The notes under the pieces are model-generated. The model did not search any database. It saw nothing but the letters and a program-made list of their open reading frames with translations, and had not been told where the DNA came from. Positions 5,393-59,600 of a stretch of 64,000 bases of DNA are shown here, one piece after another. Every line of letters begins with the position of its first letter. Position 1 is the stretch's first letter. The stretch comes from Ylistrum balloti (lineage: Eukaryota). The stretch covers positions 1,488,001 to 1,552,000 of the forward strand of contig NW_026782356.1 in assembly GCF_031769215.1 (NCBI RefSeq). The letters are read 5' to 3'. The position numbers and the translations under genes were made by a program.

Positions 5393-6498
5393 ATGGAGTT
5401 GCCTTCTTTGTTTATGCTGGTTTTGTTGTGTAGGATAGAATTATGCACAGGAGAAAATAAGGATGGATATGACGAATTAATTACTGTCGCGGACATGAAG
5501 AAGTTCATGGTGGAGACTTCAGCTTCTCTTCGTTATTACCAACAGAAGACAGAGTCTTTACAAAATATTGTAACAAAACAGGAACGTGAAATACAGGTCC
5601 TGAAAACAGACCTCTCGAGACTGACATCGGGAAAATGTGACGACATGAGAAATATTGATAAAGGAGGTAAGAGGTACACAACATGACACACACGTATATA
5701 TATAAATAGATAATTATTGATTCTTGATGGGACTTTCTGACTCAAAATCACGGGACGATATGTACCAGAATGTGCTGCGGTACAGAATATGTTTGCTATA
5801 TGTGTTTAATATATCTCTTTAATAATAGTTATTTCAATCGAACTCCGCTGTTTCATATAATGACGTTTAAACTACTCATTGACTGGGAAACAAACAAAAT
5901 AAATTCATACCATTATGAACTTAAAAACATCTTGTTTATAAATTATCACTACCTACCGAGTTGGTGAACTATCAGTCCTTACATTCATTCTCTGAAGCGT
6001 GGATATTTTGATTATATACTGCGTATCGAATACACCTTTGTTCATCATTGCTGTTCTCACTTTAAAGGTATCAAACGAGTTGCAGAGTTGAATAATCAAA
6101 CTGTGGGTGTTGCGTTCTACGCCCAGCTATCCACCGACCAGTCCACTTTTGGTACTCACCAGACCGTCATATTTGACCAAGTACGGACCAACATCGGGAA
6201 TGCCTTTAACCACGATGATGGAGTGTTCACGGCGCCATCTGCCGGAGTATATGTTTTCTTCTGGACAACAACAAATCGAGATAGAACACACATGCAGACG
6301 GAGCTGGTTATCAATGGGGTACAGTATGGAAGAGCATGGGCCGACTCGGGGAATCATGATGACGTTTCAATGGCTTCTAATACAGTGGTCGTATCGCTTG
6401 TGCAAGGGGACACCGTTTGGATCCGATCTGATACTATACATTCCGGTTTCACAAATGGACAGAACTTTGCAACGTTCTCTGGCTGGTTGTTACATTAA
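5393..6498 (+). CDS. Secreted C1q domain-containing protein (signal peptide, short coiled coil, gC1q), 2 coding exons, 234 aa
   Basis: Exons 5393-5666 (GAG|GTAAGA) and 6068-6498 (TTTAAAG|GT), with matching phase 1. Hydrophobic N-terminus MELPSLFMLVLLCRIELC; heptad segment LQNIVTKQEREIQVLKTDL; gC1q motifs VAFYAQL, VIFDQVRTNIGNAFNHDDGVFTAPSAGVYVFFW, LVQGDTVWI, TFSGWLL. AATAAA follows the stop. Confidence 0.95.
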
Positions 6499-25178: not shown

Positions 25179-26300
25179 CTTAAACAATGTGAGGCCACAG
25201 CTATCACTTAAACAACGTAGGGCCACAGCTATCACTTAAACAATGTATGGCCACAGTTATCACTTAAACAACGTATGGCCACAGCTATCACTTAAACAAT
25301 GTATGGCCACAGCTATCACTTAAACAATGTATGGCCACAGCTATCACTTAAACAATGTATGGCCACAGCTATCACTTAAACAATGTATGGCCACAGTTAT
25401 TACTAAAACAACGTATAGCCACAGCTATCACTTAAACAATGTATGGCCACAGTTATTACTTAAACAACGTATAGCCACAGCTATCACTTAAACAACGTAT
25501 GGCCACAGCTATCACTTAAACAACGTATAGCCACAACTATCACTTAAACAATGTATGGTCACAGCTATCACTTAAACAATGTATGGTCACAGCTATCACT
25601 TAAACAATGTATGGCCACAGCTATCACTTAAACAACGTATGGACACAGCTATCACTTAAACAATGTATGGCCACAGCTATCACTTAAACAATGTATGGAC
25701 ACAGCTATCACTTAAACAACGTATGGACACAGCTATCACTTAAACAACGTATGGCCACAGCTATCACTTAACCAATGTATGGACACAGCTATCACTTAAA
25801 CAACGTATGGCCACAGCTATCACTTACACAACGTATGGCCACAGCTATCACTTAACCAATGTATGGCCACAGTTATTACTAAAAAACGTATGGCCACAGC
25901 TATCACTTAAACAATGTATGGCCACAGCTATCACTTAAACAATGTATGGACACAGTTATTACTTAAACAACGTATGGCCACAGCTATCACTTAAACAATG
26001 TATGGCCACAGCTATCACTTTAACAATGTATGGCCACAGTTATTACTTAAACAACGTATGGCCACAGCTATCACTTAACCAATGTATGGCCACAGTTATT
26101 ACTTAAACAACGTATGGCCACAGCTATCACTTAAACAATGTATGGCCACAGTTATTACTAAAACAATGTATGGCTACAGCTATCACTTAAACAATGTATG
26201 ACCACAGCTATCACTTAAACAATGTATGGCCACAGCTATAACTTAAATAATGTATGGCCACAGCTATAACTTAAATAATGTATAGTTACACCTATTACTT
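25179..26300. repeat. Minisatellite, 28-bp unit (CACTTAAACAATGTATGGCCACAGCTAT), ~40 copies
   Basis: Directly visible tandem copies with AATG/AACG and CTATC/TTATT variants. Confidence 0.97.
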
Positions 26301-26389
26301 TAATACAATGTATTACTTATCTGGTTAATTAAGCTATTCTGCCATTTAATAAAGAATTTCAAATATGACAAATGATTTCTGATATAAGT

Positions 26390-31966: not shown

Positions 31967-34243
31967 TTACATGTATCTGATTTCATAGAACGAGATTTTG
32001 CCCTTGTAGTGGGCCACTGCAAGGATTTTCTGGTCGTTACTAACACTGATGGTATACTGCACCTCGTGACCACCTAGTCGTTCCCTTTTAATATCTCCAT
32101 GCACAACCTTGCGTGCATGACCTGAATAAGATGTTATAAACACATTGCCGGATGAAGCGTCTAGTATGAGAATACTTTTCAGTACAGGCAGTAAAGCGAT
32201 TCCTTGTGGATCTTTTAGTGAATCATGCCCATAACGCCGCACAACTTCAGGAGAGTTTTTGCTATTTTTTATGTCATAGACCTCCACTTCATTTTTACGC
32301 ACATCACAAAACACAAGAAATGTGGTTGTAGACATAAGAAGACTCCTCGGAACTGTCATTGAGAACATAAGGTCAATTTTCTGTACGATATCTCCACGCA
32401 TAGTTAAAATATCAATCCTTGCAGCAGAGAATGGTGGTCCTCTTCCACAAATGAGTCTGTCTTTGTCTCTACAGTAACCTATACTAATGTACTTTCCAGT
32501 TTCCATCACAAACTCTAGCTTAGCTGGTGTTTCACCAGGTGTATCTGCAAAGGATACAAAGAGTATATCACCTTCTTCCGGAGCAGTCACAACACAGAGA
32601 GTGTCTGATATACCAGCGACATCCCATGGCTCCGATGCACAGTAGAATTGGTCAACTAAGGAACCAAACCCATCACTTCTGAAGCGTTTAAGGCACTTGT
32701 TTTTTTTGTCTGCCACGACAAAGAATTCTCCTAAAGACACAATGCCCATCAAGGAAGGATTAAACTCGTCTTTGTCTGTTACTGTATCAATCTTTGTTAG
32801 ATACTTAAACATGGTGACCGTTTGTGCATTTAGAGGAATTGGTGTAAAAGTGGATTCCTGTGGGGAATCAAATGGTTCAGACGATGCACTCAGGGACAGC
32901 GGGGGCGCAGATGGTTGCACAGTGGAGCGACCGTCAGCAGAAGGGTAATGGACTTGTGTGGAGGGACTATAATGAAGACGGGAAGAGGGTCCAGGCATAT
33001 CATCAAGGGCCGACAATGGTGGGGCAGATGCTGAAGGCTGGCGTCGAATAACCGATGAGTTCAAAGGACGCCGTCTTTGTATGAAGGATTGTCGAGCTAC
33101 ACTATTATAAGTCGGTGGTGGTTCCTCAGGTGGAAGGGGGGGCGACATTTCTTCATGTTGTGTGGTCATTAACGAAGACCTATCAGGAGTTGACAATGCA
33201 GAATCCAGTTCGGCGCGTACCTGCTGGTCAACAACAGCATCTTCCTGGAAAGTAACAGCACAAGCATCCATATGACAGCAATCAACAATTTCGATCTTCA
33301 CGATGTCCGTGTCGGCCAATTTGTCCTCCAACTCTGTGTTGACAATGAATCGTACATTATATTCTGTGTCGATATCTGATTGTAGTTGTGAAAACATCGT
33401 TTTAAATCTTTCCAAATTTTTCCTTAAATGGTTCGTTACAACTAAATTTTGCGGTGCATGTGTAGTAATTTGTTTTTGTACAGCAAGTGCAAGTTCCTGT
33501 TGTAATTTTACAGATGACGCCATCTTATCACAAACCACAGCGTCGCGCTCTAAGTATGCTATCTCATTCTCTCGAAGTTCTTTTGCTTTCTCTAGTACTT
33601 TCCTCTCTTGCTCTGCCAGGTACTGAACAACTTTTTCTCGTAATTCTGAATAATACAACTTGATTGTTTCATCATGTGTTGCAGGGTCAGGGACGATGTT
33701 TCCTATTTTTGTGTTAAGAATGTTGTGTAATTCTTCAGTTTCAGACAGAAAGTTAGTTAGTTGTTCTGCGACTTCCTTGCTATTGTTGAATGCTTTCATA
33801 TGCATACCCTTGTCAATCTTGTGTAGCTCACAACGTACATGCATCTCTCGTCTGCATTTATGGCAAGCAAGCATGTTGCAATTCACACAGAAGTAATCGT
33901 ACATATATTCATCGTGAAGATTACATGATACTGGAATCATATTATTCACACTATACATCGCTTCAGGTTCTTCGCCATTTTTGAAAAACTGCTGGACATC
34001 CTTCATAAGAGTATCTTCCTCTAGTATCAGTAATGTATCCTGTGAAACAACCGATTCTTGTTCCTCGGGCAAATGTTTATATCCGCATACTGGACAAGGA
34101 AACGAAGCTTTGCCATAGAATTCAGTGATGTAAAGTACCAAACATTCATGGCAAAAAACGTGCTGACATCTGAGTTTCTTCGGGTAGGTAATAGGTTCAT
34201 CACAAATCCTACATCGGTAAAATTCCTTGAGTACCTCTTCCAT
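31967..34243 (-). CDS. TRIM-family E3 ligase, 758 aa, intronless CDS: RING (C3HC4), B-box2, coiled coil, Pro-rich linker with PPTY and PSAP, beta-propeller (NHL-like)
   Basis: RING CRIC-x11-CQHVFCHEC-x15-CPVC; B-box CNLH...FCVNCNMLACHKC...H; helical region; C-terminal repeats LMGIVSLGEFFVVADKKNKCLKRF, EPWDVAGI, DPQGIALL. An acceptor at 34321-34322 indicates a 5'-UTR intron. Confidence 0.95.
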   Translation of the reverse strand: MEEVLKEFYRCRICDEPITYPKKLRCQHVFCHECLVLYITEFYGKASFPCPVCGYKHLPEEQESVVSQDTLLILEEDTLMKDVQQFFKNGEEPEAMYSVNNMIPVSCNLHDEYMYDYFCVNCNMLACHKCRREMHVRCELHKIDKGMHMKAFNNSKEVAEQLTNFLSETEELHNILNTKIGNIVPDPATHDETIKLYYSELREKVVQYLAEQERKVLEKAKELRENEIAYLERDAVVCDKMASSVKLQQELALAVQKQITTHAPQNLVVTNHLRKNLERFKTMFSQLQSDIDTEYNVRFIVNTELEDKLADTDIVKIEIVDCCHMDACAVTFQEDAVVDQQVRAELDSALSTPDRSSLMTTQHEEMSPPLPPEEPPPTYNSVARQSFIQRRRPLNSSVIRRQPSASAPPLSALDDMPGPSSRLHYSPSTQVHYPSADGRSTVQPSAPPLSLSASSEPFDSPQESTFTPIPLNAQTVTMFKYLTKIDTVTDKDEFNPSLMGIVSLGEFFVVADKKNKCLKRFRSDGFGSLVDQFYCASEPWDVAGISDTLCVVTAPEEGDILFVSFADTPGETPAKLEFVMETGKYISIGYCRDKDRLICGRGPPFSAARIDILTMRGDIVQKIDLMFSMTVPRSLLMSTTTFLVFCDVRKNEVEVYDIKNSKNSPEVVRRYGHDSLKDPQGIALLPVLKSILILDASSGNVFITSYSGHARKVVHGDIKRERLGGHEVQYTISVSNDQKILAVAHYKGKISFYEIRYM

Positions 34244-36267
34244 GTTGTAGGAGTTAAATCAAGTAGCTCTGAGCCTTTCGTTTTATATGGTCATTTCCCC
34301 CATGTCTATATTTATGACATCTGTAAAATAAAAGAGTAAATCTAATAAGAATTTTGACTACATCATTTTACATTGTACAAAAGGAATTTATCATGATAGT
34401 TTCCAATACCGTCAGGCTGAAAAAGGACTATATTTAAATGTTAGTTTTAATACAAAAGTATAATAAATTAAATAGAACTTTTACCAAAGTACACTGAGTG
34501 CAATCTTTCGATGAAAAAAGTAATAGATGCATGTCGACTTATTTAAACAAGTGATCACATCAAGAAATTGTTTTTTTCTTGGTCTATTTATTCCCAAGAA
34601 ATAGCATTTATAAAATGTTAAAATTCATATCTATGATGGTCAACTTGCAGCTATTTCTTCCCAGTCTCAAAGTTAACAGATTGAGAAATATCCTCCAGTA
34701 CTTCTCTAGAAATAGCAATAACAGAGACTGTTTGGTGTATATATGAACAATGTACTTAGTACTCCGGCTGGTATCAGATGTCACAAGACCTTAAAAGTCA
34801 TATACTTTTTGTAACAACTACTTGGCATTTTGTGTACACAAAACATTCCATATTTGCATTTTTTTTTAAATGTCTGAGGTTTTTATTTCTTTTTGTCTTC
34901 CAGTAATGCCAAGTTCACACATACTTTATGACAACAATACCAAAACACATCAGTTGATTTATAAAACTAAATTAACATTTATTCTAAAATGGTTTTCTTA
35001 ATTTAACAAAAGTGTCCAGGCATTTGTACTATTTCACTGATCTGTTTTAACATTAATTTTTAATAATGATAATAAATAAACCTTTTATCTATCCAGGGCT
35101 ACATATTTAGGCATGTCCAATTTACAATATGGCCCTGCAGTAACATATATACAGATATCACAGTAAGCTTTCAGATACATATTATATAAAAAAAATAACA
35201 TATGAAGTTTAAGATTCAGTAAACCTACAATACATAGAAGATGAAAATATCACATATGAATTTATACTTACTAAGATATATAATGACCTATACACTTCTA
35301 ATCAAAGTAGCATAATACATCAGATATATTTGGTACAAATCTAAAAAAATTTTGGGGGAAAAATCCTTGACATATTTATGTTTCAAAGCAATTACACTAT
35401 CAGCAATTTTCTAATATTTTCACTTATAAGATTTATCAAAACTGAACATTAAAAATAGTTAGTTCTAGCTGAAGGAATATACAATTTTATTTGTTGGAAA
35501 CAGAAGACCTACTATTGAACTAAAGGTAAAATTTCAACTATATCTTCCAATATTTGATATAAAATATTAAATCAAAACTGCCATTCAAGACACGTTTTGT
35601 CAGAATGACAATTACAAATGACAGGTAATGATGGTATTCCTTATAAAATCTATAATATGGAATTATCATAGAATCTCAGTTTTATGTACAACTTATATTA
35701 TTTATTTGTACACATGCATTAAATCCTAAAATCTTTGTGTTGTGACATTCAAAGAAAGCAAACTGTCATCTGAATGAAGCATGGATAATATCTTATTCAA
35801 TGATGCAACCCCTTCACACAATGTATACAGTAGAATGACAATACAAACGTTGTTCATACAAAGCAATAAAACGAATCCTGAAAAACACTTGTAAAAGAAA
35901 GATATACCCTCACATACACACGGTAAACAACACCAAAATGAATTGAGGGTCATTATATTCATACACAACACTAAAACCAGAGATGTACATAACACATATA
36001 TATGTTTCTGCTAAAACAAATCATGAAAATCAATTGAACAAGAAATAATAATACATGTACCAATAACATTCATTACAGTGTTTTATTATACAACAAACTG
36101 GACATACAAGTCTCTACAATATGTGTAGATCGAAACAACTGCCTATAGGAAAGCGGAGGTCAAAGCTATGTTGGTCATGATGCAATAATTTAAGAATTCA
36201 CAGAGTACAGCAGAACAGATATTAGATCAATAATTTACAACAAAATATATAGATGATTTAATAATAC

Positions 36268-36662
36268 CCAAAATCAAATGGGCCCGACTAGGGACCAAGG
36301 GGAACCTACATATGAAATTTATGAAAGATCCATAAAATACTTCTCAAGAAATAGTGATAACAAAACTTTCAAAGTAAAAACCCAAGATGGCCACCTTTTG
36401 GCCATTTTTTGTTTTTCTGATCAGTCCCAAAATTACATGGGCACAACTAGAGACCAGGGGGAACCTACATGTGAAATTTAAGAGAGATCCATCTGTTACT
36501 TTTCATGAAATAGCGATAACTTTATTGAAAAAATCAAAGATGCCTACCTGTCTGCCATTTTGCTTTTCTGATCAGGCCCAAAATCAAATGGGCACAACTA
36601 GGTACCAAGGGCCACGGACGCAGAGCAATTTAAACCCACCATCTCATGATGGTGGGCTAAAA
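36268..36662 (-). mobile_element. Helentron-associated (HINE-like) element with ~155-bp internal repeats and a terminal hairpin
   Basis: The end AAACCCACCATCTCATGATGGTGGGCTAAAAA is a palindromic terminus. Three modules CCAAAATCAAATGGGC.C.ACTAG..ACCA.GGG. It is the reverse-complement homologue of 59793-60290. Confidence 0.7.
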
Positions 36663-36667
36663 ATCTC

Positions 36668-37050
36668 AATTAATGAAATGCTGAGCAACTGAAAACCTTG
36701 CAGGACACTCACTCCTACATGGTAGGTCATTATTTTGTTAGTTGTGCATGCTCTGCGTCAAGTACAGCAGTGTAATTCAATATTTTTCAGTCTGTCAATC
36801 AGAACCATTTCTTGCATGTTGGTAGACATTGGTGTAAAGTATATAATACAAAATGAATTATTAAAAAGTCTTTATTAATGAAATGCCCGGCATGTGAGAG
36901 TCTCAAAGGACACTTACTCCTACTAGGTAGTTCAGTATAGTGTTAGTTGTGCACACTCCGCATCAACTTCGGCAGTGTATTTCAATACTTTTCTGTCGGT
37001 TAATCAGAACAATTTTTTGCATGTTGATAGACGTTGGTGAAAAGTGAATA
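36668..37050. repeat. Diverged tandem duplication (~205-bp period); each copy ends in a minus-strand splice-donor-like site
   Basis: Over a 105-nt core I count 20 differences and no indels. Both copies have GTAGGA|GT(G/A)AGTGTCC on the minus strand (donors at 36712 and 36917). Confidence 0.8.
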
Positions 37051-37052
37051 AT

Positions 37053-37229
37053 CAGGGCTCTCTCACCCCATTTTGGGACTGGGGCCCGGGGCCCTTAGAA
37101 GTGGGAAAAATAATGGTGTTTTCCTTAGAATTGGGAGAACTTGGGGTCTAAATTGGGAAAAAAAAGATACTATTTTGCATTGGGAATGGGGCCAAATATC
37201 GCCCCAAATCTGGCAGATCGAGAGCCCTG
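37053..37229. mobile_element. MITE, 177 bp, TIR CAGGGCTCTC...GAGAGCCCTG, 5-bp TSD ATAAT
   Basis: TIRs and the flanking ATAAT direct repeat were read directly. A second copy is at 53894-54033. Confidence 0.9.
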
Positions 37230-37704
37230 ATAATACCAAAAAAAGAAAAAAAAAACACAAAATGATCTTTATTAATGAACTGGTGGGTGCTAAATATGTC
37301 ACAGGACACTCCCAAGACACTCATTCCTCCCAGGACACTCATTAGGACCTCTCATTTTCATGGGGTCGGGTCCAGGGACCAAGTGTAAACAAATGGCCCA
37401 TGTTCATAGTAAATGTAAGGCTTTATGTGAATCATGCCTCTTTTTGGGGTAAAACTGATGTATTCAAAATCAAATAAGTATAATTATTGTTTGGAATTTT
37501 TAAAATTCTGAAATCAAACCATATGATAGCTGTAATTTGCAAAACCTTAAAAAATTTCACAGTTGAGAATGGCGTACACAATTCATCTCCATCCAAGTTG
37601 TTACCTGTAACCTCTGTTACCTCTTCATAGACACAACTTGTTAGCTTATCTCAGCCAATTGAGGCGCATTTAGAGTTGTAGCTATTTTAAGAATGTATAA
37701 AGAC

Positions 37705-38370
37705 AAAAAAAAATTCCCGTATTAAACTTTTTTATGAGTTTTTGAAAGGTTTTGATCTTAGAAAGTTGATTAAAAGTAAAAAATCAATATGTTGCTGCAC
37801 CACTTTTTCCAGCGCAGACGTCAGAATATATATTAGAACAGGTAATTATTCAATTCCACATATAATTCTTGTTTCTTCGCTGAATAACAGACATACTTTG
37901 TTATTTCCGAAGTAACCATTTTTTGAATAATTTTTTTTCCTTTATTACAAAGTAAGGGATATTAAGGAGAAAAAAGTTCTGTGAAAATGCTAAGTTTTCA
38001 CCTAATTTAAAGAGCTTTAATCTCCATAGCAACCAAAAAAAAAAAAACAAAGAAAATGCTCCAAAATTACATCTATCTTATATTTGACCATTTTCTAATA
38101 TCAAACTTTTAATGACATAAGGCTTTGATAGAGAAATTTTTGAGGATACTTTTCGTGTTAAAAAAGGAAAGGTCTCTGTGCTTAATTTTCTGTAATTTTC
38201 ACCTAAACATAAAGTTTTTCAAGATCAAGAAACAATCACAAATGTTTATTTTTCTTTGCAAAAAAAACCTGGGAAAGTGATCCAACCATGTCGGAACTCA
38301 GGAATTCGAAACCTGTAATTCGTGTAATAATTCATGCAAATTTTAGTTGTATCCTATCCAAGATTTCCAG
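37705..38370 (+). mobile_element. Interspersed AT-rich repeat, homologue of 19600-20045
   Basis: Collinear shared blocks, as listed for 19600-20045. Confidence 0.7.
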
Positions 38371-38672
38371 AGTTATCCTCAAGAGAAATATCTTGATAAC
38401 AGGGAAATGCTGAAAATGTCGAAGCTATTAACCGAATTACTTATCTTGGTATCCCTAAGTTGACCGCATATCTGGGCAATATCAACACTACATGCAAAGT
38501 TATTGCAGAAATTTTGGCTATATTTGCAATAGTGCCATCGATTTATATATATAAAAGTAACTTTACCCATATCGTGTAAATTCGGCAAAGTCAACGAGTG
38601 TCCTGTGTGCGTCAGCTATAAAGAGAACCAAAGGCGTGAACTGTTAAAGTTACAATTGCAGGGCGTCCTACT

Positions 38673-39881
38673 AATGTCAGGAATTCCTGCCAATGAATGG
38701 CAGGAAAGTCAGGAAATGACAGGAATGCATGTTAGTGGATTAAGTTTGTGTTTTATGAATTAAAATAAACAATTCTAAGTTAATTAAAGTATTTTACATG
38801 TTATTTTAATGTTTTACAGATTTCATTATATTTTAGATTGCGCTTTGAGAACTAATGTGCAAGTCGTGATAAGTAGGCCTACTACTATAGTAAGTAATGG
38901 CGGCCGTCGATATTCATGGTAATATCGACACTTTATTGAAATGATTTTTGATGATCAAATATTTGAATTGATGTCAATGCAGGTGATCCTATGAAGATGA
39001 TATGGGGTTTATATAGATCTATTTGAATTTAATTATGTTTTCGTGTGTCCCAGAGGAGGCATACCAATATCATTGTCACATTATTTGGCATTAATTCTTA
39101 ATCATATTGCATAAGCATCATTATTGCCAAATATCAATGTTCTAGGATATTTCTAAGTTGTCTTTTCAAAGACCACTGAAATTTCAGGACAAAACATTTT
39201 GAGACAAACTATAGTGAATTTTTATCAGTAATCAAATTTGGTAATTTTAAAGTATAAAGTTTTTGTTATTTCTATTAGAACACAGAATAAATTATTATTT
39301 ATAAAAAAAACAATATGGACTCTTGGTAGAACTACGTAGAACACCCCGTCGTTGAGTCTGGTAACATTTGAAGAAAAAATTCAAATGGCTAAATGTTCTA
39401 CACAGCAATAATCAAAATGTGCAGGTCATAAGTATGTAGACCTGTCCGAGTTATGTCCCTTCCTGCCACTAGCGTGAGATAAACAAAGTCAGATATTCGA
39501 AGCCTGGTTCGTAAAAATAACAATAATTTCAATTATTATATTTCACAAATTTGTGAACAAAACACTCACTTTTCACATATTTCTCACAAACAAACAGAAT
39601 GCCTGAATAAAACAAACGACTTGTGATGTTTGAGGTTGCCCACTCGCTGTCGCAGGGCCCTATCATGGCCTATGCCGCGGTGTACATATGTGTTAGTAAA
39701 CACGTTAAAAAATTTCTTTAAATGCTTAAAATACACCAAAAACATTACAAAAATGTATTATTTGAAGTAATTTTAAGGTTTGAATACGATACGAAATATT
39801 GTTAGCTTAAACACGGAGCAATGTAAGTTTCCTGCCATTTCCTGACTTTCCTGCCATTCATTGGCAGGAATTCCTGACATT
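38673..39881. mobile_element. ~1.2-kb non-autonomous element with ~55-bp terminal inverted repeats
   Basis: Left AATGTCAGGAATTCCTGCCAATGAATGGCAGGAAAGTCAGGAAATGACAGGAA is the reverse complement of right TTCCTGCCATTTTCCTGACTTTCCTGCCATTCATTGGCAGGAATTCCTGACATT. No coding capacity inside; no TSD evident. Confidence 0.85.
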
Positions 39882-41559
39882 GCAATGCAGGCGCATTCGA
39901 TCATTTTAGACTTACACAAGTCCCCTTTTCACAATATTACAACTTGTAGGTACAAAGGTTGAAGTAATTAGTTTTTTTTATATAGCTTAAGTTCTAATTG
40001 CAGAAAGTCATGTTACTGTAACGTAATTGCGATAGTAATGTTACATCAGGGATGTAAAAAGCGTCCCTGGTGATTTACATACATGTCACCTATAAGTAAT
40101 TTTACTCCTCCGGAACACTTCTAGCACTTTTTCATGAGTCTCCCTGCAAATCTTTCTTTTGTTCATTTTTTTTTTATTGAATTCGAGTTTCGATTATGAT
40201 TATGAACTGAAATTTACAGTTTATTCATAGTTTGCCCCGTTTAAATCCATTTAGATAATCTATTCGCTATTCACAACTGGAACATTGCATTTGTAGATGA
40301 ATTAAACACCAACTAATATTACTCACTCCTAGTCCTCTTTCTCCTTTCCTAATCCATGTAATGTGTTTATATTGAAAAATTTATAGCAAACTATGTTCGA
40401 AGAATTAATGCACTGAGACATCTTTAAAATGTAATTTTGTTTTGAGGGGGGATGTTGTATATATATATATATATAATGGGTGAAGTGATGGGAAATAATT
40501 GTTTGGTCTTATCGCTCCATCGCTCATTGGATTAGGTACGATTCAGCATTTAGTTTTATTGATATTGGAACTCTTTGGTATAAAAAGTTGCGAAAAGGAA
40601 TAAAAATAAATTGAAAAGAGGGACTCAGCACTCTGGACAGGTTTGTTTATTGTCATTTGTTACCCTACCGAATTCCCCGACCACATTAGATATGCCTCTG
40701 AAAGATGATGTATCGAAACACTTAACAAACGGATAAAATCTACAATTTAACTATATACTACATGTCTTCAAGTTCAACTGAAACATTGAAGAAATTTGAA
40801 TTATTTTTGCCAGTCCTTTAACAACCAAGATACTTATAAATGTACCAAGTTGACACTTTATTCCCAAACTTTTGGACGGTTAGGGTGGGTGAGAGATAAC
40901 TTTGACTCCATTTGGACATCGCTTGATATTCAGTGTCCTATATCTATTCAGAAAAAAAAACTGTATATAACGTCAATCCTTCGTGTATCTTAAACGTTGA
41001 GCGGAAACTAAAGTTAGGCAGGTATTTTGTATTACCGTTCACACGTATGATGTTTACATGTCACAGGCGAATCGATGTGCGAGGGATTATTCCCAATACC
41101 ACAATTTTCTTCTAGATGTCGACATGTTCATTACTCTCCATGTGATTTTTTTTCTTTAATACTTTGTCCTTATTTTAATCAGGGACGTAGATAACAAAAT
41201 TTTCGCTTCAGTTAATATATATTACTATTCCCGGAGTCAGTAATGTTGTATACATTAGCCTATGGAAATAATTCTTTTGAAACGAAATATGAAGTGTTTG
41301 ATAGATTAAAAAGTGGAAATGGGACCATTAAATGTACACGAGATGGCCAATTTGCTGGAATATGTTATCAATGTATTATTCGATCGTGAGAGTTATTTCC
41401 ACTGATGTAATTTTCTGGATATTAATAAACGTTTTCGTTTTCATTTTATTACTATTTACCTGGTTCAGGCTATAATGTTCATAAATGATTGTTATGTAAT
41501 AGCGATAATGTGCTTAGAGTTACTTAAAGTTTGTTTCCAGTACAGAAACTCACTGTTCC

Positions 41560-42560
41560 TCTTCACTGGTCTCGATACTTTGTTCGGATTCTAGGGTGGG
41601 TCTGTCACTTCCTGATGTCACTGCTTTTATTTTTGCCCTATAGTTGTACAGCAGCCCTTGGTTTTTCTATATAACTTATCCAGTCTGTTTTTGAAGGTAT
41701 TTGAATTTGGTGCCGTGACCACCTCTTCTGCAAGGTTGTTCCATATTCTACGCACTCTCAACGAGAATAAAGTTTTGTCTTGAGCTTGTTCTTGCCCTCT
41801 CTGGAAATAACTTCTTGGACCTACCTCTGGAGCTGTTCCTGGCAGTGACACAGTCCCAAGGTTTAAGAATATTATCACTTTCTCTGTCATATACATGTTG
41901 ACAACCTTGTAGGATTCTATCACCTTGCAGGCACCAGTAAGCTAATGTGGGTAGCCACAACTTCCTCCGTCTTTCCTCATACATGAGATCCTTCAACCCT
42001 GGGATTTGCTTTGTAGCACTTCTCGGTACCCCTTCCACCGTTTAAGTGTATTGTTAAGGAGACCAGACGGAGCTGGCAAAATCTAGACGATCCCATACTA
42101 ACGTTTTATTTACTTTTCACTAAAAAGGTTTTGGAAGGCAAGATTTGAGTCCACCAATATGCCTACACATGGAGTTTGCTTTATTTACTTTTCACTAATA
42201 TGGTCTTGGAAGGTGAGATTTTGAGTCCAATATGCCTACATATGGAGTTTGCTTTATTTAATTTTCACTAATATGGTCTTGGAATGTGAGATTTGAGTCC
42301 ACCAATATGCCTACACACAGAGTTTGCTTTATTTACTTTTCACTAATATGGTCTAGGAAGGTGAAATTTGAGTCCACCAATATGCCTACATATGGAGTTT
42401 GCTTTATTTAATTTTCACTAATATGGTCGTGGAAGGTGAGATTCGAGTCCACCAATATGCCTATATCCTTTTTGCTGTGTGGGCAAGCACTTGGTTACAT
42501 ATAGTTTTCCTCGATACACTTGTGCTTACATTTTTCGAATGCTTGGGAAATATTACTGAA
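41560..42560 (-). mobile_element. CR1-clade LINE, degraded 3' RT fragment
   Basis: QKDIGILVDSNLTF.DHISEK.VNKANS; LVWDRLDFASSVWSP; VPRSATKQIPGLKDLMYEERRRKLWLPTLAY...GD; FSLRVRRIWNNLAEEVVTAPNSNTFKNRLDKLY, the typical CR1/L2 C-terminus. Confidence 0.9.
42104..42468. repeat. Minisatellite, ~75-bp unit, ~5 copies, derived from CR1 RT coding sequence
   Basis: Unit CTTTATTTACTTTTCACTAATATGGTCTTGGAAGGTGAGATTTGAGTCCACCAATATGCCTACACATGGAGTTTG. Its reverse complement encodes GILVDSNxTFxDHISEK/(K)VNKANS. Confidence 0.9.
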
Positions 42561-45500
42561 ATCATGACAGGTAGAGTTTTCTTTCTATTTTGTTTCTCAA
42601 ATTTTCTTATATTTTATAATCATAAGACTGGTATTTACAAAGAAGTGAGTTTTTTAGCAAACAGTATTGTAAATATTAACAATTAGTCATTTAAAAGTGT
42701 ACCAATTGTAAAATGTAATGCAATTAATTGGTTTATAGTTGAAGGGAGCTTATTTATCGCCCCTCTTAAAAACTGGCATCACTACAGTATGTTTCCATCA
42801 TGAAGGAAAAGATGTCTCCAAAGAAGGATCTAAAATAAAAGGCAAGGAGAGGCTTTAAAGCATAATGTAATTACTGGTAATTTATTATTTCTTCAACGTG
42901 TGTATAGGAGATTGGAAATGGAGAAGTTTACTGTCCCATCTGGAGTACCACAATCTTTACAGACTTCTAACCATCTAGGAATATTGTCAGCTATTGATAT
43001 ATTGAGATAAGTCTATAAAATACAGCCTACATCAAACTACAAAACTACATGCTCTTGGTAAGACAACTAACTTCTAAGACTACAAATATTTGAATAAAAA
43101 TAATATCTTTAGAATGACCACTGGGACCTGGGTTTGGACGAATGTCTTAACTAGGAAACAGTAGATGCAAAATTAAAAAAAAAAAAAAATTCAACAATGC
43201 TAGACAAGAACAACTGAGCAGTACATGCTAATTTTACTGTAGTATTCATCATACAAGACCTGAACCTGCATAATAATTCAGGGAGATTAACATGAACTTA
43301 CTGTTGAATATCAAATATAAAAAAAGTTATCATTACACAACGTACAATGAAAATCCTTTGAACAGGGAGGAAGAAATTGTCACCTGTAAAGCAGATTGTG
43401 ACATTTCGAAGTGTTTAATAGGGTGTGGCTATCAGGATTATGAATGTAATCAAATTCAAGGAAATATTATCTAGGTTACAGAGGTTGATGATGACATACA
43501 ATTCTTGATAGTTGGACAATCAGAAAATAATTTTATCTATTAGAATAGACAACAGAACATATAATTAGCTTATATTTTAATAGCAGTAATTCAAGTTTGT
43601 ACATTTATACCCTTTCCGATACCCCGAACCTGCAGTGTACATTTTATCATACGATACATATGATACAGTTATAACAAAGGTAGATATCTTACGCAGGTTA
43701 ATAGGTTAAATGATAACACTTCCATACAATAAAGCAGTTCCATTTAGAAATTTCTTTGAATTACCCAAGATTAACAAGTTAAGCTCTCAACATCCATATT
43801 TCCAATCGCCATAATTTTTTTTTTTACACAAAGTTAAAAGTTCTACAAAAAATACTTAGAAATCCGTTTAAGTCATGAAGGCATTATTTTACTATCTTGT
43901 CTCGTGATAGGTCGAAGTTTAGACTTGACACAAAATTAACTATTTCATAGGCTTTTCACAACATCTTACCTCAAGTTCAATAATTCAAGCAGTTTATATA
44001 TTACATATTTAGACTCTAGACTGTACAACTCCAGATCATTTATTTGTATTACCTGAAGAAAACCTTTCTAAACATGACCCCTTCTTAAACCCAGAAGAGG
44101 ACATTTGATACTATTTTCTTACTACTACCAAAAGCAAATGTATGCAATATGCAAATGATGAAATATCATCACAGTTACTGAAAAAAAAGTCATTTCAAAT
44201 AACTTAACAAAAATGACCCATGTAACCTTAAAAACAAGTCAAAATCATTCATATTATCCAAACTGCAGGCTAACGACCAGATGGTCTTACATGTGAAATC
44301 CGAAAAAGCCATTTTAAACTTTGACCCCTATCAAGAACTGGAAGTTGAAATTATACAAAAAATGTTTCCCGAGAAATGTTATTTATTTGTTATTTTACGT
44401 CACATAAGATGAATCCAATATGTTCATTTGTTATTGCAACTTGAGGCAAAATCTGATATGATGCCATTTTGTTTTTTGATGAAGTTGAAAACGTCACTAA
44501 ATGGTAGACAATGACATCTTGGTAAACCTTTCCCATAATAATTAAACAAAATAAAAGTATTTGATATAGGTCTAAAACAAGTTTTACCAATATGTCAGCA
44601 TTTTAAAAGACCAAAAGAAAATTCAAAATGGGTCCAACGTTAAATGTAAATGCTTAAGAAAAACTGAAGATATCAAATTCATTAGAATGACATTTGTCAT
44701 CTTTCTGTTGAAGAATTTAAAAAAATAAAACAATTTTTTTTTAAAAAATGAATAAAAAAAAAAAGGAAAAAATGAAAAAATTAAAATTTGTGACCTTTTA
44801 CCCAACAGTAAGCTTTCTTTAAATGACTTATTCTGTATTAACATATAATGTAAAAAAGTTAGATATGGGAATTATCTACAAATAATATATATGATTGAAT
44901 TCTGTATAATCAACAATTTTCGTGATATGGCTACTTTAAAATTCTTACCATATGACGTCGATGGTGGTCATATTGGATTTATGACCAACTTAAAAATACT
45001 ACATCTACAGATATGTACCCATAAAGAACTAAAGAGGCTGTAAACCTATCTCTTACTGATCATAAATTTGGACTCCACAAATTTCAGAATGATAATAATA
45101 AAAAGAAACATAAATTTCAGAATAATATTAATAAAAAGAAACATAACAATAACAATGTCTTTTCACCAGATAGTGAAAAGCCCTGATAACAATGTAAATT
45201 TATCTTGTGAACAACTAACAAAGTGACAAGATATTGTATAAGGCAATATAAAGGCGATAGTTTACATATAATCTTCATATGTTGTGTACGTTATGTTTAT
45301 ACAATTGTATTGTTATAGAAGGAATGAACATTGGGAACAACAGGCAAAACTAAATCAGTCGCTTCTATGGAATGAGTATGAAACAGTGAACGCATTCAAT
45401 GATAACAATCTTGAAATGACTTTGTATCAATTTAAATGACACAGGTTCTCGCAAGGATTGAGATGGAAGGGGCCAGGTACATAGAATATAGGAAGACAGA

Positions 45501-46448
45501 CCAATGGAAGTAAAAGATTGGAAGACAAAACGAGGAACATAGGTATGACCTATACAGTGCTCCAGATAACTTTTTGACATGTGGGGTTTTCACTCCTACC
45601 TTTATAAATTGAGGGGTTTTTTCACCCCTGCCTTCATCAAGTGTATGGGTTTTTCCATATTAGGGTAACACTGAATTTGTAAACATTTTTGAGAGCGCCA
45701 TATTTGCTATGCGACTGGTTTATAATCACGATCAAGTAAGCGCTTGTTACGAGTTTCGTTTACTTGATAAGTGTCTGTTTTCTAACTACGTAATATTGGA
45801 GCCGGACATTGACGCAGAGTCCGGATTTCGCACTGGTTTTCCTAGCGTGAAATTAGAAATATTGTGCGTGAAAACGCATTCACGTAGGCTATCTGGAGCA
45901 CTGCTATATCTATGCAACATCCGAAGCATATATACAGCATTGATGAAGTTAATACATCATTATAAAATATGTGTTCTATTCCATTAAGTAGTAAGTGGTC
46001 TGCTATTATCAGTATTAAGAAATATAAAAAATAAATATATGTCTGGCTGTTGTTTTAATCCTCACCCATTCTCTTACTTCATTATGATCATTGGGTGCGA
46101 TCGATGACAACTTCATCTACTATCTACAAGTAACTTTTGAATTTCTAATCTTGTACATTTATAATGGTGATCTTGTTGGACTTCAATGGTGATGTTTTCG
46201 ACTTTCATTTATAACGAGCTTCTGAATTTGTATAAAGACGAGCCTTCCATTGTAAATTAACATTTTAGAATGTCAACAGAATTAATTACAATATTGATAA
46301 CATCTACCTGTAACTTAAGTGTATTCAGAATTCATATCACAGATACCTGAAAATAATCCATTACATTCAAAATACTTTCCAAAAATTTCCAATGAACTAA
46401 ATCTGGTTTAAATCTGGATCTGCAGCCTTACAAACTCTTGTAAATTTT

Positions 46449-48695
46449 CTAGACCTGGGTAACAGATGGGAGATAGGAATACTCTATATCATAGAGTGAC
46501 ACAAATCCATCAGCACTGGTTACTGCTAGAGTCGTCCCGTCCATACTCGTGCACATTTGAGTGTCTATTTCAGCCGATCCTTCCACCGAAATCTGATTAG
46601 GAAGGACCTTTACAAGTTGTCCTGAAAATGATGCTACTGTAAGATCTCCATTTCTGCTGTCTAAAATTAGAAGCAAATCCATTTCATCAACTATGGCAAT
46701 GCCTTGTTGTTTTGAAAAACTCAATGCAGCATGCCCAACAAAAGTCTTCTTATTAATATGGTTTGTATCACTGGATTTGAAGAATATTACCTTTGATTTA
46801 TCAAGGTCACTAAGTATTAGATCAAAAGGTTTTGTCACAACAATGTTACGTGGGCTTTGGCAATAATCTACAGGAATCTTTCTCCTAACGCGTCCTTGTA
46901 AGTCAATCACATCAATTCTTGTGGAACAAAATGGTGGACATAAGCAACCAATTAAAAGCTCTGTCTCTTTATGAAAGGCTATGTAAGCATACTGACCCGT
47001 TGTTAGAGCCTTGCGAACACTGATTTCCTCACCTTGTTTCAAAGCTGGATCACGGAGGAAAAGCAACTGTTTTTGTTTTGGAGCAGTGACAACGCATTCG
47101 ACATCAGATACAGCAGCAACATCCCAAGGTTCCACATATCCAAAATCATGGACATTCAACAACCCTCCATGTTGACTGAGAACTTTCATGCAATAGTTCG
47201 ACCGGTCGAGTACAACAAATGTGTCACCAACAGTTGCTATAGCTACTAGAGAAGGGATATTAATGTCCCCAGAAAGCTGGATATCAATGTAGTCCTTGTA
47301 CTGTAACCTTGCGATCCCATCTTTGACATGTGGATCAACTGCGGACTCTGCATTGTTAGCCAATGATCTGTCGGATACAATATTGCTGTGGTCAATAGTA
47401 GATTCAGAAGATCCTGTAGAGTGATAATAATGGCTGCCAGGACCACTCCTTAGTTCAGATTCTGGAAGTGGTGGAGCTGATGGCTGTGTGAGAGTAGTGG
47501 AAGGGAGATTCATGTTTTGTGGTAATGTCATAGGTGGAGCTGTAGGAAGAGGGCGCTGGCCAGAAGATGGACAATTTATTTCCAGGGAGGGCTGTTGTAA
47601 TACACATTCATATGTAGGTAGGCCTTCTTCATCTTCACCTAGTAAACCTGACTCTGATATGCCATCTTCTCCAGGAGAATCAGGATTTTCATTGTCTTCA
47701 AAGGTCACAATATAGGGTCCTGAGTGGCAGCTGTCAATCACTTCAATATTAACAATGTCTACGTTTGTCATTTTGTCCTCAAGTTCTGTATTAATCATAA
47801 ATCTCAAGTCAAATGACTTCATCAAATCGGACTCTAAATCAGGTAAAATATCTGTAAATGATCCCATAATCTTGGACAAATCTCCTGCAAGAATCATGTT
47901 CTGTGATGGTTTTATTGACGTCTGAAGCAGCAAAGCTATGATTAGTTTCTGATGAGCATCTAAAGAAGTAAGCAGTGAAGAACATACAGAGATGTCATCA
48001 TCTAGGTACATTTTCTCTTTTTCTTCTAATTCTTTTGCCTTTTTCAATATTTTATCTTCTTGTTGTTCCAGATAGTGAATAACATTTTCCTTCAAATCTG
48101 CATAATATGCCTTCACTGTTGATTCCGTATTTTCTCGGTCAGGGATGGCATGTTCTAGTTTTGATACCAATTTTCCATGAAGCAACTGAGTACGTGACTT
48201 AACCGTCTCTATGTCTGTCGAAATTTGCCGCATCCTGTTGTAGCAACTGGTTTCCATGGTTTTTGTGATGGTCTCGAGATGACATCCTCGATGCATGTTT
48301 ACTCTACACCGAGGACATACGAGTACGTTGCATGCCTCACAATAATACGAGCAACGGTTCCTTGGATGAATGGAACACAATGGAGACAATACACCATTTG
48401 ACGATTGGATAGCAGGTCGTTCATTTTCGTCACTGTAAAATTGGCGTAAGTTTCTTGTCAGGGAATCCTCTTCTAAGGCTGACAGCATAGTGTCACTCAC
48501 TTCTGTTTCTGGTTCCTGTGGTGTATGCTTATACTTGCAAACAGGACAGTGGAATAATGTCTGACCGAAGTATTCACTGATATAGCCAATCAAACATTCA
48601 TGGCAGAAGATATGCTGGCACTTTAGCTTTTTGGGATAACTTACAGACTCGTGGCATATACCACACTGGCATAAAGATTGAAGTATCACATCCAT
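46449..48695 (-). CDS. TRIM-family E3 ligase paralogue, 748 aa, intronless CDS: RING, B-box2, coiled coil, linker with LPTY, PTAP and PSAP, beta-propeller
   Basis: The first in-frame ATG is at 48695 (MDVILQSLCQCGIC...). The track's TTG start adds 16 aa after an in-frame TAA. RING CGIC...CQHIFCHEC...CPVC; B-box CSIH...YCEACNVLVCPRC...H; propeller IPSLVAIATVGDTFVVLDRSNYCMKV, EPWDVAAV, QQGIAIV. Acceptor at 48801-48802. Confidence 0.95.
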   Translation of the reverse strand: MDVILQSLCQCGICHESVSYPKKLKCQHIFCHECLIGYISEYFGQTLFHCPVCKYKHTPQEPETEVSDTMLSALEEDSLTRNLRQFYSDENERPAIQSSNGVLSPLCSIHPRNRCSYYCEACNVLVCPRCRVNMHRGCHLETITKTMETSCYNRMRQISTDIETVKSRTQLLHGKLVSKLEHAIPDRENTESTVKAYYADLKENVIHYLEQQEDKILKKAKELEEKEKMYLDDDISVCSSLLTSLDAHQKLIIALLLQTSIKPSQNMILAGDLSKIMGSFTDILPDLESDLMKSFDLRFMINTELEDKMTNVDIVNIEVIDSCHSGPYIVTFEDNENPDSPGEDGISESGLLGEDEEGLPTYECVLQQPSLEINCPSSGQRPLPTAPPMTLPQNMNLPSTTLTQPSAPPLPESELRSGPGSHYYHSTGSSESTIDHSNIVSDRSLANNAESAVDPHVKDGIARLQYKDYIDIQLSGDINIPSLVAIATVGDTFVVLDRSNYCMKVLSQHGGLLNVHDFGYVEPWDVAAVSDVECVVTAPKQKQLLFLRDPALKQGEEISVRKALTTGQYAYIAFHKETELLIGCLCPPFCSTRIDVIDLQGRVRRKIPVDYCQSPRNIVVTKPFDLILSDLDKSKVIFFKSSDTNHINKKTFVGHAALSFSKQQGIAIVDEMDLLLILDSRNGDLTVASFSGQLVKVLPNQISVEGSAEIDTQMCTSMDGTTLAVTSADGFVSLYDIEYSYLPSVTQV

Positions 48696-56600: not shown

Positions 56601-59600
56601 TCGAACGGGATGGCAACACTCAGCTTCACTTACAACAAGGAAATGTTCTTTGTACCTGTCATGTTTATTCTCAAGGTGAGCAACGCTCTCATTCATAAAG
56701 TAAAAATGTGATGCTTACGTACAGAAAATTCAAACTGGGAAGGAATAAAGAATCTTATTTGTTGATAGATTTATCATTATCAGCTTCTGATATTCATCAT
56801 TTACATGTCTATATAAACACGTCCCCTTTATTAGTAACTTTTCTATGGTGCACTTTGTACTTTTATTATTGTTGTACACGTTGTAGAAGTAAGTTTATTT
56901 TTGGCACATTTCAAGTTGACAGTATTGTTAAGATATGATTACTCTTCTTACAATTTTTTTATGTCATATATATAAAAGAACAGTGGTGCTAATTTCCCAA
57001 AAAATGATATTGCGTTTAAATTTGATGGCATCAAATGAAAGTATGTTTACAGGTTCTGTACAAGATTTGAAGTTCATGTACACATCCACAGACTATGTTC
57101 TTGAAATGATTTGAGGCAGATTTGCATAGATATTTGTGTATGTGTTTGGCAGGCTCTGTTAACAGTCACGGACAAATACATCTATGATGAGCTGATCCAG
57201 GGGAAAGAAGATGACACTTATTATAAGGGGTAATTCTCTACTAAGTATCACTGTAAACAGAATAACTCATCGTTAGTATTACTGAATGATTATTATATGT
57301 GAATATTATTGAAATCTTGAAAATACTACTACTGCTTATCAAATATGTTTGATGAGAAATTGGAGACGGAACTGTTACCTATATGAGAATTGTACATGGC
57401 ATCAGTAAAATGAATCTGCGGCTCCTGTATAGGGTAAGTAGGTTTAATACTAAATTTGATTTCATGTAGTCTACTGATATTTATTACAAGATATATGCAT
57501 TTCTACCTCTATCACTAAACATAATTATCTTTGTTACCACTTTATCACTAGTTGTATGGTAGCAATGCTACGGCAGGCACAGGATGAAGGCCTTCTGACT
57601 CAGTCCAGCATCTTGAAGCTAATCGGGGAACGCTTCCGCATCAAACTTGATCTCCCAGTGTGGTATTCTGATACAGACGTAGCCAGATACCTGTTAAAGT
57701 AAGTGTTTGTGTATAAAGACTTGTGCTGAATGCTTTGTGTTTGAAATTACCAAGAAATGTGTCTGGCTGTTGTGGGAAGGTGTAACTTTGAACGTCAAGA
57801 ACCTTGAAGTTTTATTAGGCAGATGTCAGAGAGTGGATGTGAATAGAAGGACTGTAGGTTGACAGATTGTACAGAGCATTGAGGTGGATATTAGGATTTT
57901 GGGTTGATGGATTGTCCAGAGAGTGGAAGCGGATGTCAGGATGTTTAGTGGAGGGATTGTACAGATAGTGGAAGTGGATGTCAGGTTGTTTAGTGGAGGG
58001 ATTGTACAGATAGTGGAAGTGGATGTCAGGTTGTTTAGTGGAGGGATTGTACAGAGAGTAGAAGTGGATGTCAGGATGTTTAGTGGAGGGATTGTACAGA
58101 GAGTGGAATTGGATGTCAGATGTTTGGTTGAGAAATTATACCGAGAGTGGAAGTGGATGTCAGGGTGTTTGGTAGAGGGATTGTACAGAGAGAAGAAGTG
58201 GATGTCAGTATGTTTAGTTGAGAGATTGTACAGAGAGTGGAAGTGGATGTCAGGATGTTTGGTTGAGAGATTGTACAGAGAGTGGAAGTGGATGTCAGGA
58301 TGTTTGGTTGAGAGATTGTACAGAGAGTGGAATTGGATGTCTGAACTTTTGGTTGAGAGATTGTACAAAAGTGGATGTGGATGTTAGGAGACTAGGGTGA
58401 CAGATTGTAGAGCGAGTCGATGTAAGGACTTTGGGTGGACAGATTGTACAGAAAGTGTGTGTGGATGTCAGGACATGTGTTGACAATTGTAAAGAGAGTA
58501 GAGGTGAATGCAGGACTTTGGGTTGATGGATTGTGCAGAGAATGGCAGTGGGTGTCAAGACATTGGGTTGAAAATTGTATAGAGTGAGTGGAAGTGGGTG
58601 TCAGGACTTTGGGTTATGATATTGTTTAGAGAGTGGAGTTGGATGTCAGGACTTTAGGTTGTGATATTGTATAGAGAGTGGAGGTGGATGTCAGGACTTT
58701 GGGTTGAATTATTATGGTGAGAGTGGAGGTGGATGTCAGGATTTTGGGTTGAAATGTTATAGTGAGAGTGGAGGTGGATGTCAGGACTTTGGGTTGTGAT
58801 ATTGTATAGAGAGTGGATGTGGATGTCAGGACTTTGAGTTATGATATTGTATAGAGAGTGGATGTGGATGTCAGGACTTTGGGTTGTGATATTGTATAGA
58901 GAGTGGAGGTGGATGTCAGGACTTTAGGTTGTGATATTGTATAGAGAGTGGATGTGGATGTCAGGACTTTGGGTTATGATATTGTATAGAGAGTGGAGGT
59001 GGATGTCAGGACTTTGGGTTATGATATTGTATAGAGAGTGGAGGTGGATGTCAGGACTTTAGGTTGTGATATTGTATAGAGAGTGGATGTGGATGTCAGG
59101 ACTTTGGGTTGTGATATTGTATAGAGAGTGGATGTGGATGTCAGGACTTTGAGTTATGATATTGTATAGAGAGTGGATGTGGATGTCAGGACTTTGGGTT
59201 GTGATATTGTATAGAGAGTGGAGGTGGATGTCGGGATTTTCGGTTGTGATATTGTATAGAGAGTGGAGGTGGATGTCAGGACTTTGGGTTGAAATATTAT
59301 GGTGAGAGTAGAGGTGGATGTCAGGATTTTGGGTTGAAACCAAACTGAAAACATTTTGATTCATTAAATTCAGAAATATCTTTCTTCTTCAGGCATTGCA
59401 TTGCAATTCACTTGGATTCCAATACTGATAAGTTCAACCTTTTATTGTAAGTATAAGCTGTTGAAAAATCCAATGTTTAGAGCAAGGATTATTGTGTTCT
59501 TAAAAGGTCCATACAGATATGTTAGTATGGTCACTATAGACTTTGTGCAGGTTTTGTAATACTCATGTAAACATACAATCATCTTATGATTACTTGGTAG

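Follow-up and report, generated by a model that had tools for sequence, protein, structure and literature searches.

The class VII TRIM-NHL ubiquitin ligases, which include TRIM2, TRIM3/BERP, TRIM32, TRIM71, Brat, Mei-P26 and Thin, have in common a RING finger, a B-box, a coiled coil and a six-bladed beta-propeller. TRIM2, TRIM3 and TRIM71 also contain a filamin/Ig domain, which is absent in TRIM32. TRIM3 belongs to the Hrs-containing cytoskeleton-associated recycling or transport (CART) complex on recycling endosomes (PMC3782429). Here, we describe TRIM-A and TRIM-B, two TRIM genes of Ylistrum balloti that are located in a stretch of 64,000 nucleotides (assembly GCF_031769215.1, contig NW_026782356.1, positions 1,488,001 to 1,552,000 of the forward strand; hereafter the window, to which all coordinates refer). 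The two genes are intronless tandem paralogues of the same orientation, encoded on the minus strand at 31967-34243 (TRIM-A) and 46449-48695 (TRIM-B) with 12.2 kb between them, and every feature of either gene mentioned below lies on that strand. In contrast to the class VII ligases, TRIM-A and TRIM-B contain a disordered linker of 120 to 180 residues in place of the filamin/Ig domain, and this linker displays two types of short motif, PY ([LP]PxY) and P[ST]AP. Judged by their sequence, these are selected short linear motifs of the classes bound by WW domains and by TSG101 through its ubiquitin E2 variant (UEV) domain, respectively.

Both motif classes are well known from other proteins. PY motifs, defined as PPxY or LPxY, are ligands for the WW domains of NEDD4-family HECT ligases (PMC8509885, PMC2824488), and the UEV domain of TSG101, a subunit of the endosomal sorting complex ESCRT-I, binds P[ST]AP, a motif used by cellular Hrs (PMC2172688). 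RING ligases carrying one such motif have also been described, either P[ST]AP (LRSAM1/Tal, MGRN1) or PPxY (RNF11). LRSAM1/Tal is a RING E3 ligase with coiled coils and employs a P[ST]AP motif, PTAP, for interaction with its substrate TSG101 (PMC7874611, PMC6364939), but its RING is located at the C-terminus, it contains leucine-rich repeats and a SAM domain instead of a B-box and a propeller, and no PY motif is mentioned in the source. MGRN1, likewise a RING E3 ligase, binds the TSG101 UEV domain through a PSAP motif and promotes monoubiquitination of TSG101 (PMC4670916); it is not a TRIM protein and has no propeller, which restricts the analogy to the mechanism. On endosomes, RNF11 engages WW domains in HECT ligases of the NEDD4 family by its PPxY motif and also modulates these ligases (PMC7697665), but it is an acylated RING-H2 protein of 154 amino acids for which the source describes neither P[ST]AP nor a B-box, coiled coil or propeller. 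In ARRDC1, a folded cargo-binding domain is joined to a disordered tail with a PSAP motif that brings in TSG101; the protein localises in microvesicles together with the HECT ligase ITCH and drives the release of these vesicles (PMC9105457). Adaptors of this type have no ligase domain of their own, whereas in TRIM-A and TRIM-B the adaptor-like motifs sit within a RING ligase. ARRDC1 and LITAF also carry PPxY motifs.

A further likeness, taken from the literature only, is provided by the arenavirus Z protein, in which a RING domain is accompanied by a disordered arm whose P[T/S]AP and PPxY motifs are connected with Tsg101 and Nedd4 (PMC3509680). Z is a viral, myristoylated protein of ~90-99 amino acids without B-box, coiled coil or propeller, and its resemblance to TRIM-A and TRIM-B is one of convergent motif use with no evidence of common descent. 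Likewise, the two proteins are analogous, not homologous, to LRSAM1, MGRN1, RNF11 and ARRDC1, with homology to LRSAM1 confined to the RING. No TRIM or TRIM-NHL protein pairing PY with P[ST]AP is described in the full-text literature that we searched, which includes few subscription-journal papers; the original prediction, too, had recognised no described TRIM subtype with this combination. The paired motifs thus look like a new feature among TRIM proteins.

Paired motifs in a TRIM clade known from molluscs

The linker comprises amino acids 334-475 in TRIM-A (32819-33244) and 334-460 in TRIM-B (47316-47696). It is weakly conserved outside of the motifs, and the predicted local distance difference test score (pLDDT) of our AlphaFold2 models falls below 50 from residue 297 to 467 in TRIM-A and from 312 to 456 in TRIM-B, stretches that contain all three motifs of the respective protein. 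In TRIM-A, the PY motif PPTY (amino acids 376-379; 33107-33118) is preceded by acidic residues. It is followed by a middle motif, SASAPP (amino acids 404-409; 33017-33034), and by PSAP in the context QPSAPPL (amino acids 444-447; 32903-32914). The corresponding motifs of TRIM-B are LPTY (amino acids 359-362; 47610-47621), which occupies conserved columns in an alignment of 20 bivalve and gastropod sequences, PTAP (amino acids 384-387; 47535-47546), and PSAP in the context QPSAPPLP (amino acids 405-408; 47472-47483), which was located by motif scan and in the same 20-sequence alignment. Open reading frames and motif positions given in the original prediction were exact throughout. Its three collinear motifs are confirmed in both proteins, with one qualification: the middle motif of TRIM-A is a degenerate counterpart of the TRIM-B PTAP and does not conform to P[ST]AP. 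This position reads PTAP or PSAP in the B clade only, being canonical in all four B-clade orthologues, and ASAP, ASVP or ASNP in the A clade. TRIM-A consequently has one canonical P[ST]AP site and TRIM-B has two.

Searches with a word index of proteins retrieved eight orthologues, all from scallops, including Pecten maximus, Mizuhopecten yessoensis and Argopecten irradians. We aligned nine pectinid sequences covering both paralogue clades. Mean column identity in the linker, which spans ~200 columns of this alignment, is 0.2-0.5, and only seven columns are invariant. All seven fall inside the three motifs: two are the P and Y of [LP]PxY, the core of which is present in 9/9 sequences, one is the P that ends the core in the middle motif, and four are P, A, P and P of P[ST]APP. 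If invariant columns were placed at random, the chance of all seven of the 200 landing in the ~14 motif columns would be ~1.5e-9, and shuffles of the linkers that preserve composition produced both motif classes in 0.1-1.7% of trials. The earlier statement that the linkers of the two paralogues are poorly conserved except for the motifs is hence borne out. Downstream of PY, the TRIM-A clade contains a conserved basic stretch that ends in an arginine-rich run (amino acids 383-398 of TRIM-A; 33050-33097), and the TRIM-B clade shows a different conserved stretch at this place; the PY motif therefore sits in a longer, clade-specific segment.

The motif pair was originally attributed to the two paralogues. 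Instead, it is the mark of a clade in which all named members are molluscs. An exhaustive profile search yielded 1582 hits at E <= 1e-3, including 26 at E <= 1e-30, and the best 150 of the 1582 were scanned for motifs. Within this set, nearly all close relatives contain an acidic-flanked [LP]PxY in the linker, and most of them also contain P[ST]AP. The core of the latter is generally extended by P, in 69% of sites, and then by a hydrophobic residue. For the 29 close relatives other than the nine pectinid sequences, composition-preserving shuffles predict 2.6 proteins with [LP]PxY, 0.8 with P[ST]AP and 0.07 with both; we counted 23, 20 and 18, respectively. Distant TRIM-propeller hits mostly have neither motif (PY in 11/76, P[ST]AP in 8/76). 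Every relative with a source name, looked up for 30 of them, comes from a bivalve (Pecten, Argopecten, Mizuhopecten, Ostrea, Saccostrea, Pinctada, Mytilus, Mya, Mercenaria or Potamilus) or from a gastropod (Littorina, Patella, Nucella, Batillaria, Haliotis or Gigantopelta).

Over longer distances, the motifs outlast their surroundings. In the 20-sequence alignment, whose members share 19-72% identity with TRIM-B, the linker columns common to at least 70% of the rows are the motif positions only, and bivalve and gastropod relatives with just 19-27% identity to TRIM-B have kept the motifs. Their order varies, with PY ahead of PSAP in 23 proteins and behind it in 10. Conservation of motif type despite changes in position is the pattern produced by selection on short linear motifs.

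The location of the motifs varies as well. Seven relatives (P0020, P0035, P0036, P0037, P0050, P0056 and P0061) have P[ST]AP in a short tail behind the propeller rather than in the linker, and in P0020 and P0056 the PY motif is also found in this tail. P0019, a protein of 1280 amino acids from Littorina saxatilis, contains a PTAP-PPPY-PSAP segment with identical flanks twice (amino acids 457-485 and 931-959), and its match to the propeller hidden Markov model (HMM) spans amino acids 552-1200; the protein represents either a tandem internal duplication or two adjacent genes fused in the gene model. Three propeller relatives with PSAP or PTAP together with PPPY (P0061, P0130 and P0135) have no RING or B-box detectable with Pfam and may have lost the ligase domain or possess a divergent N-terminus.

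Enrichment is specific to these motifs. Our control region comprised the 8984 non-domain residues of 38 close proteins, of which 32 contain PY (3.6 ± 1.7 in shuffles) and 29 contain P[ST]AP (1.2 ± 1.1 in shuffles). There are 37 P[ST]AP sites, against 0-2 for each rearrangement of these letters, except for [ST]APP, which overlaps PSAPP. Among 14 short-motif patterns, only PY, P[ST]AP and PPLP (8/38 proteins, 0.8 expected) exceeded the shuffles, and PPLP is enriched because the B-clade motif reads PSAPPLP and the two overlap. ALIX-type YPxL, the clathrin box, di-leucine, NPF, DPF/W, SH3 class I and II, 14-3-3 and TRAF patterns were at or near background in the 38 proteins. A YxxPhi sorting signal, suggested earlier for the tyrosine of the PY motif, found no support: this residue does open a YxxV sequence in both proteins (YNSV in TRIM-A, YECV in TRIM-B), and Y-x-x-[VI] is retained in the nine pectinid sequences, but the family-wide frequency of YxxPhi is near background (29/38 against 23.9 ± 2.6) and the proteins have no membrane anchor. 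Taken together, aligned invariance, enrichment across the family, background levels of other motifs and predicted disorder identify PY and P[ST]AP as selected motifs. Absence of conservation beyond that of a proline-rich linker had been named as an outcome that would speak against the original prediction; alignments, enrichment and letter-order controls all gave the opposite result, and strongly so.

Architecture and gene structure of TRIM-A and TRIM-B

Pfam, ligand patterns, AlphaFold2 and Foldseek all support the earlier view that both genes code for ligases of the TRIM type: RING and B-box retain their ligands, and each protein has a coiled coil and a propeller. The RING finger covers amino acids 11-53 of each protein (34085-34213 in TRIM-A, 48537-48665 in TRIM-B); Pfam RING models (zf-RING_UBOX and zf-C3HC4 in TRIM-A) pass their cut-off and the C3HC4 pattern is complete in both. 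For the B-box, the zf-B_box model scores 25.7 bits in TRIM-B (amino acids 107-139; 48279-48377), above its cut-off of 24.1 and with the ligand pattern present, and 19.5 bits in TRIM-A (amino acids 107-141; 33821-33925), which is under the cut-off with the Cys/His pattern intact. Compared to the sequences of the Protein Data Bank (PDB), the family profile matched best to the RING-B-box chains of TRIM2 and TRIM3 (E 9e-15 and 4e-12).

Structure models were computed from the nine-sequence alignment for TRIM-A and from the 20-sequence alignment for TRIM-B, and the two architectures agree. Long helices are predicted at approximately amino acids 145-292 in both (33368-33811 in TRIM-A), and the coiled coil is assigned from these helices alone. 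At the C-terminus, both models show a confident propeller of 24 strands, equivalent to six blades, at amino acids 476-757 of TRIM-A (31973-32818) and 461-739 of TRIM-B (46479-47315); the latter is also recovered by the propeller HMM. Foldseek returned the NHL domains of Brat, TRIM2, TRIM3, Mei-P26 and Thin as best matches for the propeller (TM-score 0.75-0.80 on the target, 14-16% identity). In keeping with this low identity, the Pfam NHL repeat reaches 12 bits in TRIM-A and TRIM-B, compared to a cut-off of 20 and to 29 bits in the relatives P0014 and P0029.

Pfam detected no filamin/Ig domain between coiled coil and propeller of TRIM-A or TRIM-B. Its position is occupied by a conserved block of 38 residues (amino acids 296-333; 33245-33358 in TRIM-A), followed by the disordered linker. 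The block has column identities of 0.7-0.9 and low AlphaFold2 confidence, is among the best conserved parts in both paralogue clades, and corresponds to no Pfam domain. Given a RING, a B-box, a coiled coil and a propeller of the NHL fold, together with the missing filamin domain, TRIM-A and TRIM-B are divergent TRIM-NHL-like ligases with a long disordered linker. Neither protein shows a clear transmembrane segment, the maximal hydropathy windows (1.48 in TRIM-A, 1.74 in TRIM-B) both being located in propeller strands, and neither has the N-terminal glycine for myristoylation.

Each gene consists of a single coding exon, of 758 codons plus stop in TRIM-A and, counted from the first ATG, 748 codons plus stop in TRIM-B. 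A TTG start at 48743 proposed for TRIM-B by the open reading frame tool is an artefact of the bacterial code, and the ATG at 48695 aligns with the start of TRIM-A. Full-length matches corroborate both reading frames, with 56% identity between TRIM-A and LOC117343380 of Pecten maximus, and 65-70% between TRIM-B and proteins of Pecten, Mizuhopecten and Argopecten, two of which are named TRIM55-like; the closest orthologues are 56% (TRIM-A) and 70% (TRIM-B) identical. The two paralogues themselves share 32% identity over their full length. Since each of them has its own scallop orthologues, the duplication is older than the divergence of these scallops. The window is free of N runs, and tblastn with both proteins as well as six-frame HMM searches revealed no third copy, fragment or pseudogene of the family in it. 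Among relatives, P0002, P0004 and P0006 have one chromosome-scale contig in common, and P0005 and P0010 one scaffold. The 22-kb locus around the TRIM-A orthologue in Pecten maximus contained no other gene besides this orthologue.

Candidate readers and functions of the motifs

With moderate confidence, we favour a model in which the linker motifs would dock TRIM-A and TRIM-B to NEDD4-family ligases and to ESCRT-I, and in which the RING would act on clients of the propeller or on ESCRT-I. Going by the established specificity of the two motif classes, NEDD4-family HECT ligases would recognise PY through their WW domains, and TSG101 would recognise P[ST]AP through its UEV domain. Dimerisation through the coiled coil would lead to multivalent display of the motifs and could place the RING ligase at ESCRT sites on endosomes or the plasma membrane. 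There, the RING might attach ubiquitin to clients of the propeller or, following the example of LRSAM1 and MGRN1 with TSG101, to ESCRT-I itself, and the TRIM protein might cooperate with, or become modified by, the HECT ligase in the manner of RNF11. The expected result would be control over multivesicular-body or vesicle sorting.

Several observations weigh against this model. PPxY is also read by WW proteins other than HECT ligases, so that sequence does not fix the partner, and with neither membrane anchor nor lipidation signal, recruitment to membranes would depend wholly on partners. In the TRIM-A clade, the motif at the middle position is of the degenerate ASAP type, and an ASAP variant was reported to be non-functional in another RING protein (PMC3509680). 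The relatives that we counted share ancestry and are not statistically independent, and our enrichment figures for them therefore overstate the number of independent events. Moreover, pairing is not obligatory: a subgroup with very long linkers (P0026, P0028, P0029, P0031, P0039 and P0042, including proteins of Mya and Mercenaria) has three PPPY motifs in close succession and lacks P[ST]AP. Several PY motifs are also present in known NEDD4 adaptors, for example LAPTM5 (PMC2064599).

What the motifs do once bound allows for other accounts, too. The TRIM protein could merely be a client, with PY serving as the substrate signal for NEDD4-family ligases and P[ST]AP routing the ubiquitinated TRIM to multivesicular bodies, and the pair would then constitute a turnover signal. 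PY is the classical substrate-recognition signal of these ligases (PMC2824488, PMC8509885), RNF11 is itself modified by HECT ligases (PMC7697665), and the conservation and enrichment data fit this account as well as they fit an adaptor. Nevertheless, we regard it as unlikely, if worth keeping in mind: RING ligases known to carry P[ST]AP have TSG101 as a target and are not just sorted by it, and an active role is suggested by the presence of several motifs on a dimeric scaffold whose RING is intact and whose propeller is conserved. Between an adaptor, a regulator of TSG101 and a mere NEDD4 client, sequence alone does not discriminate. A different set of readers is conceivable as well. PPxY could be bound by group I WW domains of the Yorkie/YAP, Kibra or WWOX class, and PSAPP(L/P) by SH3 or group II WW domains, which would make the TRIM proteins signalling scaffolds or regulators with no link to ESCRT. 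In favour of such readers, the group II WW ligand PPLP is enriched, and the frequent P and hydrophobic residue behind the P[ST]AP core indicate that the conserved unit exceeds four residues. SH3 class I and II patterns remain at background, however, PPLP is found neither in the TRIM-A clade nor in most relatives, and strict invariance is confined to the letters P, [ST], A and P, with other orders absent. Repeated co-occurrence of PY and P[ST]AP rather matches known ESCRT-linked proteins, which leaves these other readers with a small share of our confidence.

TRIM families often act in innate immunity, and the TRIM proteins could, as decoys with late-domain-like motifs, occupy TSG101 and NEDD4 at the expense of enveloped viruses, an alternative raised in the original prediction, or bring a ligase to budding sites. 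Beyond this general tendency of TRIM families, and a motif pair that formally resembles viral late domains (PMC3509680, PMC8402826), nothing specific speaks for such a decoy, and we judge it very improbable. The sequence bears no sign of immune induction or of an arms race, stable conservation across bivalves and gastropods at 19-27% identity fits a housekeeping interaction, and the nearest solved sequence relatives, TRIM2 and TRIM3, are not antiviral TRIMs; presence of a C1q-domain open reading frame in the same window is no evidence of linkage. Least probable of all, to the point of being negligible, is a by-product of composition without function. The linkers do consist of 12-19% proline and 10-20% serine, and a single motif arises by chance in 2-27% of shuffles. 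Yet, aligned invariance, the excess of proteins with both motifs, the absence of other letter orders and the background levels of ten other motif classes effectively refute a chance origin.

Returning to docking on NEDD4-family ligases and ESCRT-I, a more far-reaching version can be drawn by analogy to ARRDC1. PY and P[ST]AP might be used as in this adaptor to give rise to extracellular or intraluminal vesicles, and the clade would then represent a self-contained ubiquitin-and-budding module in which a TRIM-NHL dimer drives formation of ESCRT-dependent vesicles and loads them with propeller cargo. We consider this extension quite improbable. The Brat structures 4zlr and 5ex7 of the PDB are among the Foldseek matches of the propeller, and the same fold binds RNA in Brat. 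The NHL propeller fold also binds RNA in Mei-P26 and LIN-41. Given these precedents, the cargo could, by analogy, be RNA.

Other features of the window and wider significance

Outside of the two TRIM genes, the window contains an open reading frame of 136 amino acids at 6088-6498 (plus strand) with a complete C1q domain (Pfam PF00386, E 5e-25), which is probably an exon of a C1q-domain-containing gene; the C1q-domain family is greatly expanded in bivalves. Further upstream, an open reading frame of 234 amino acids at 2709-3413 (plus strand) has no Pfam match. It is overlapped in another frame by 3317-3682 (plus strand), which matches a beta-propeller weakly (E 0.0026, far under cut-off), and HMM searches revealed no relation of these reading frames (2709-3682) to the TRIM propeller. 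Tandem arrays are present at 1750-2588 (40 bp x 21), at 25179-26313 (28 bp x 40, 90% matches) and, between TRIM-A and TRIM-B, at 42105-42463 (75 bp x 4.8). At 57827-59337, there is a satellite with ~34 copies of a 45-bp unit, and we rejected two open reading frames inside it (57826-58368 on the minus and 57923-58387 on the plus strand) as repeat artefacts.

TRIM proteins are usually thought to find their targets by the C-terminal domain alone, and the present clade, with molluscs as its only named members, adds putative linker signals for docking on HECT ligases and ESCRT-I to this scheme. If these signals are read as predicted, a RING ligase, a HECT ligase and ESCRT would be joined through one polypeptide, offering a natural system in which to study the coupling of ubiquitination and membrane sorting outside of vertebrates and yeast. 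Should the clade indeed function as a budding module, it would constitute an endogenous, ligase-coupled export pathway of a kind not described in any animal. The linkers also provide a clear case of short-linear-motif evolution, in which motif type is kept and position and order shift within disordered sequence that cannot be aligned. Finally, the motif signature offers a means of recognising members of this subfamily when the extensive TRIM expansions of molluscs are annotated.

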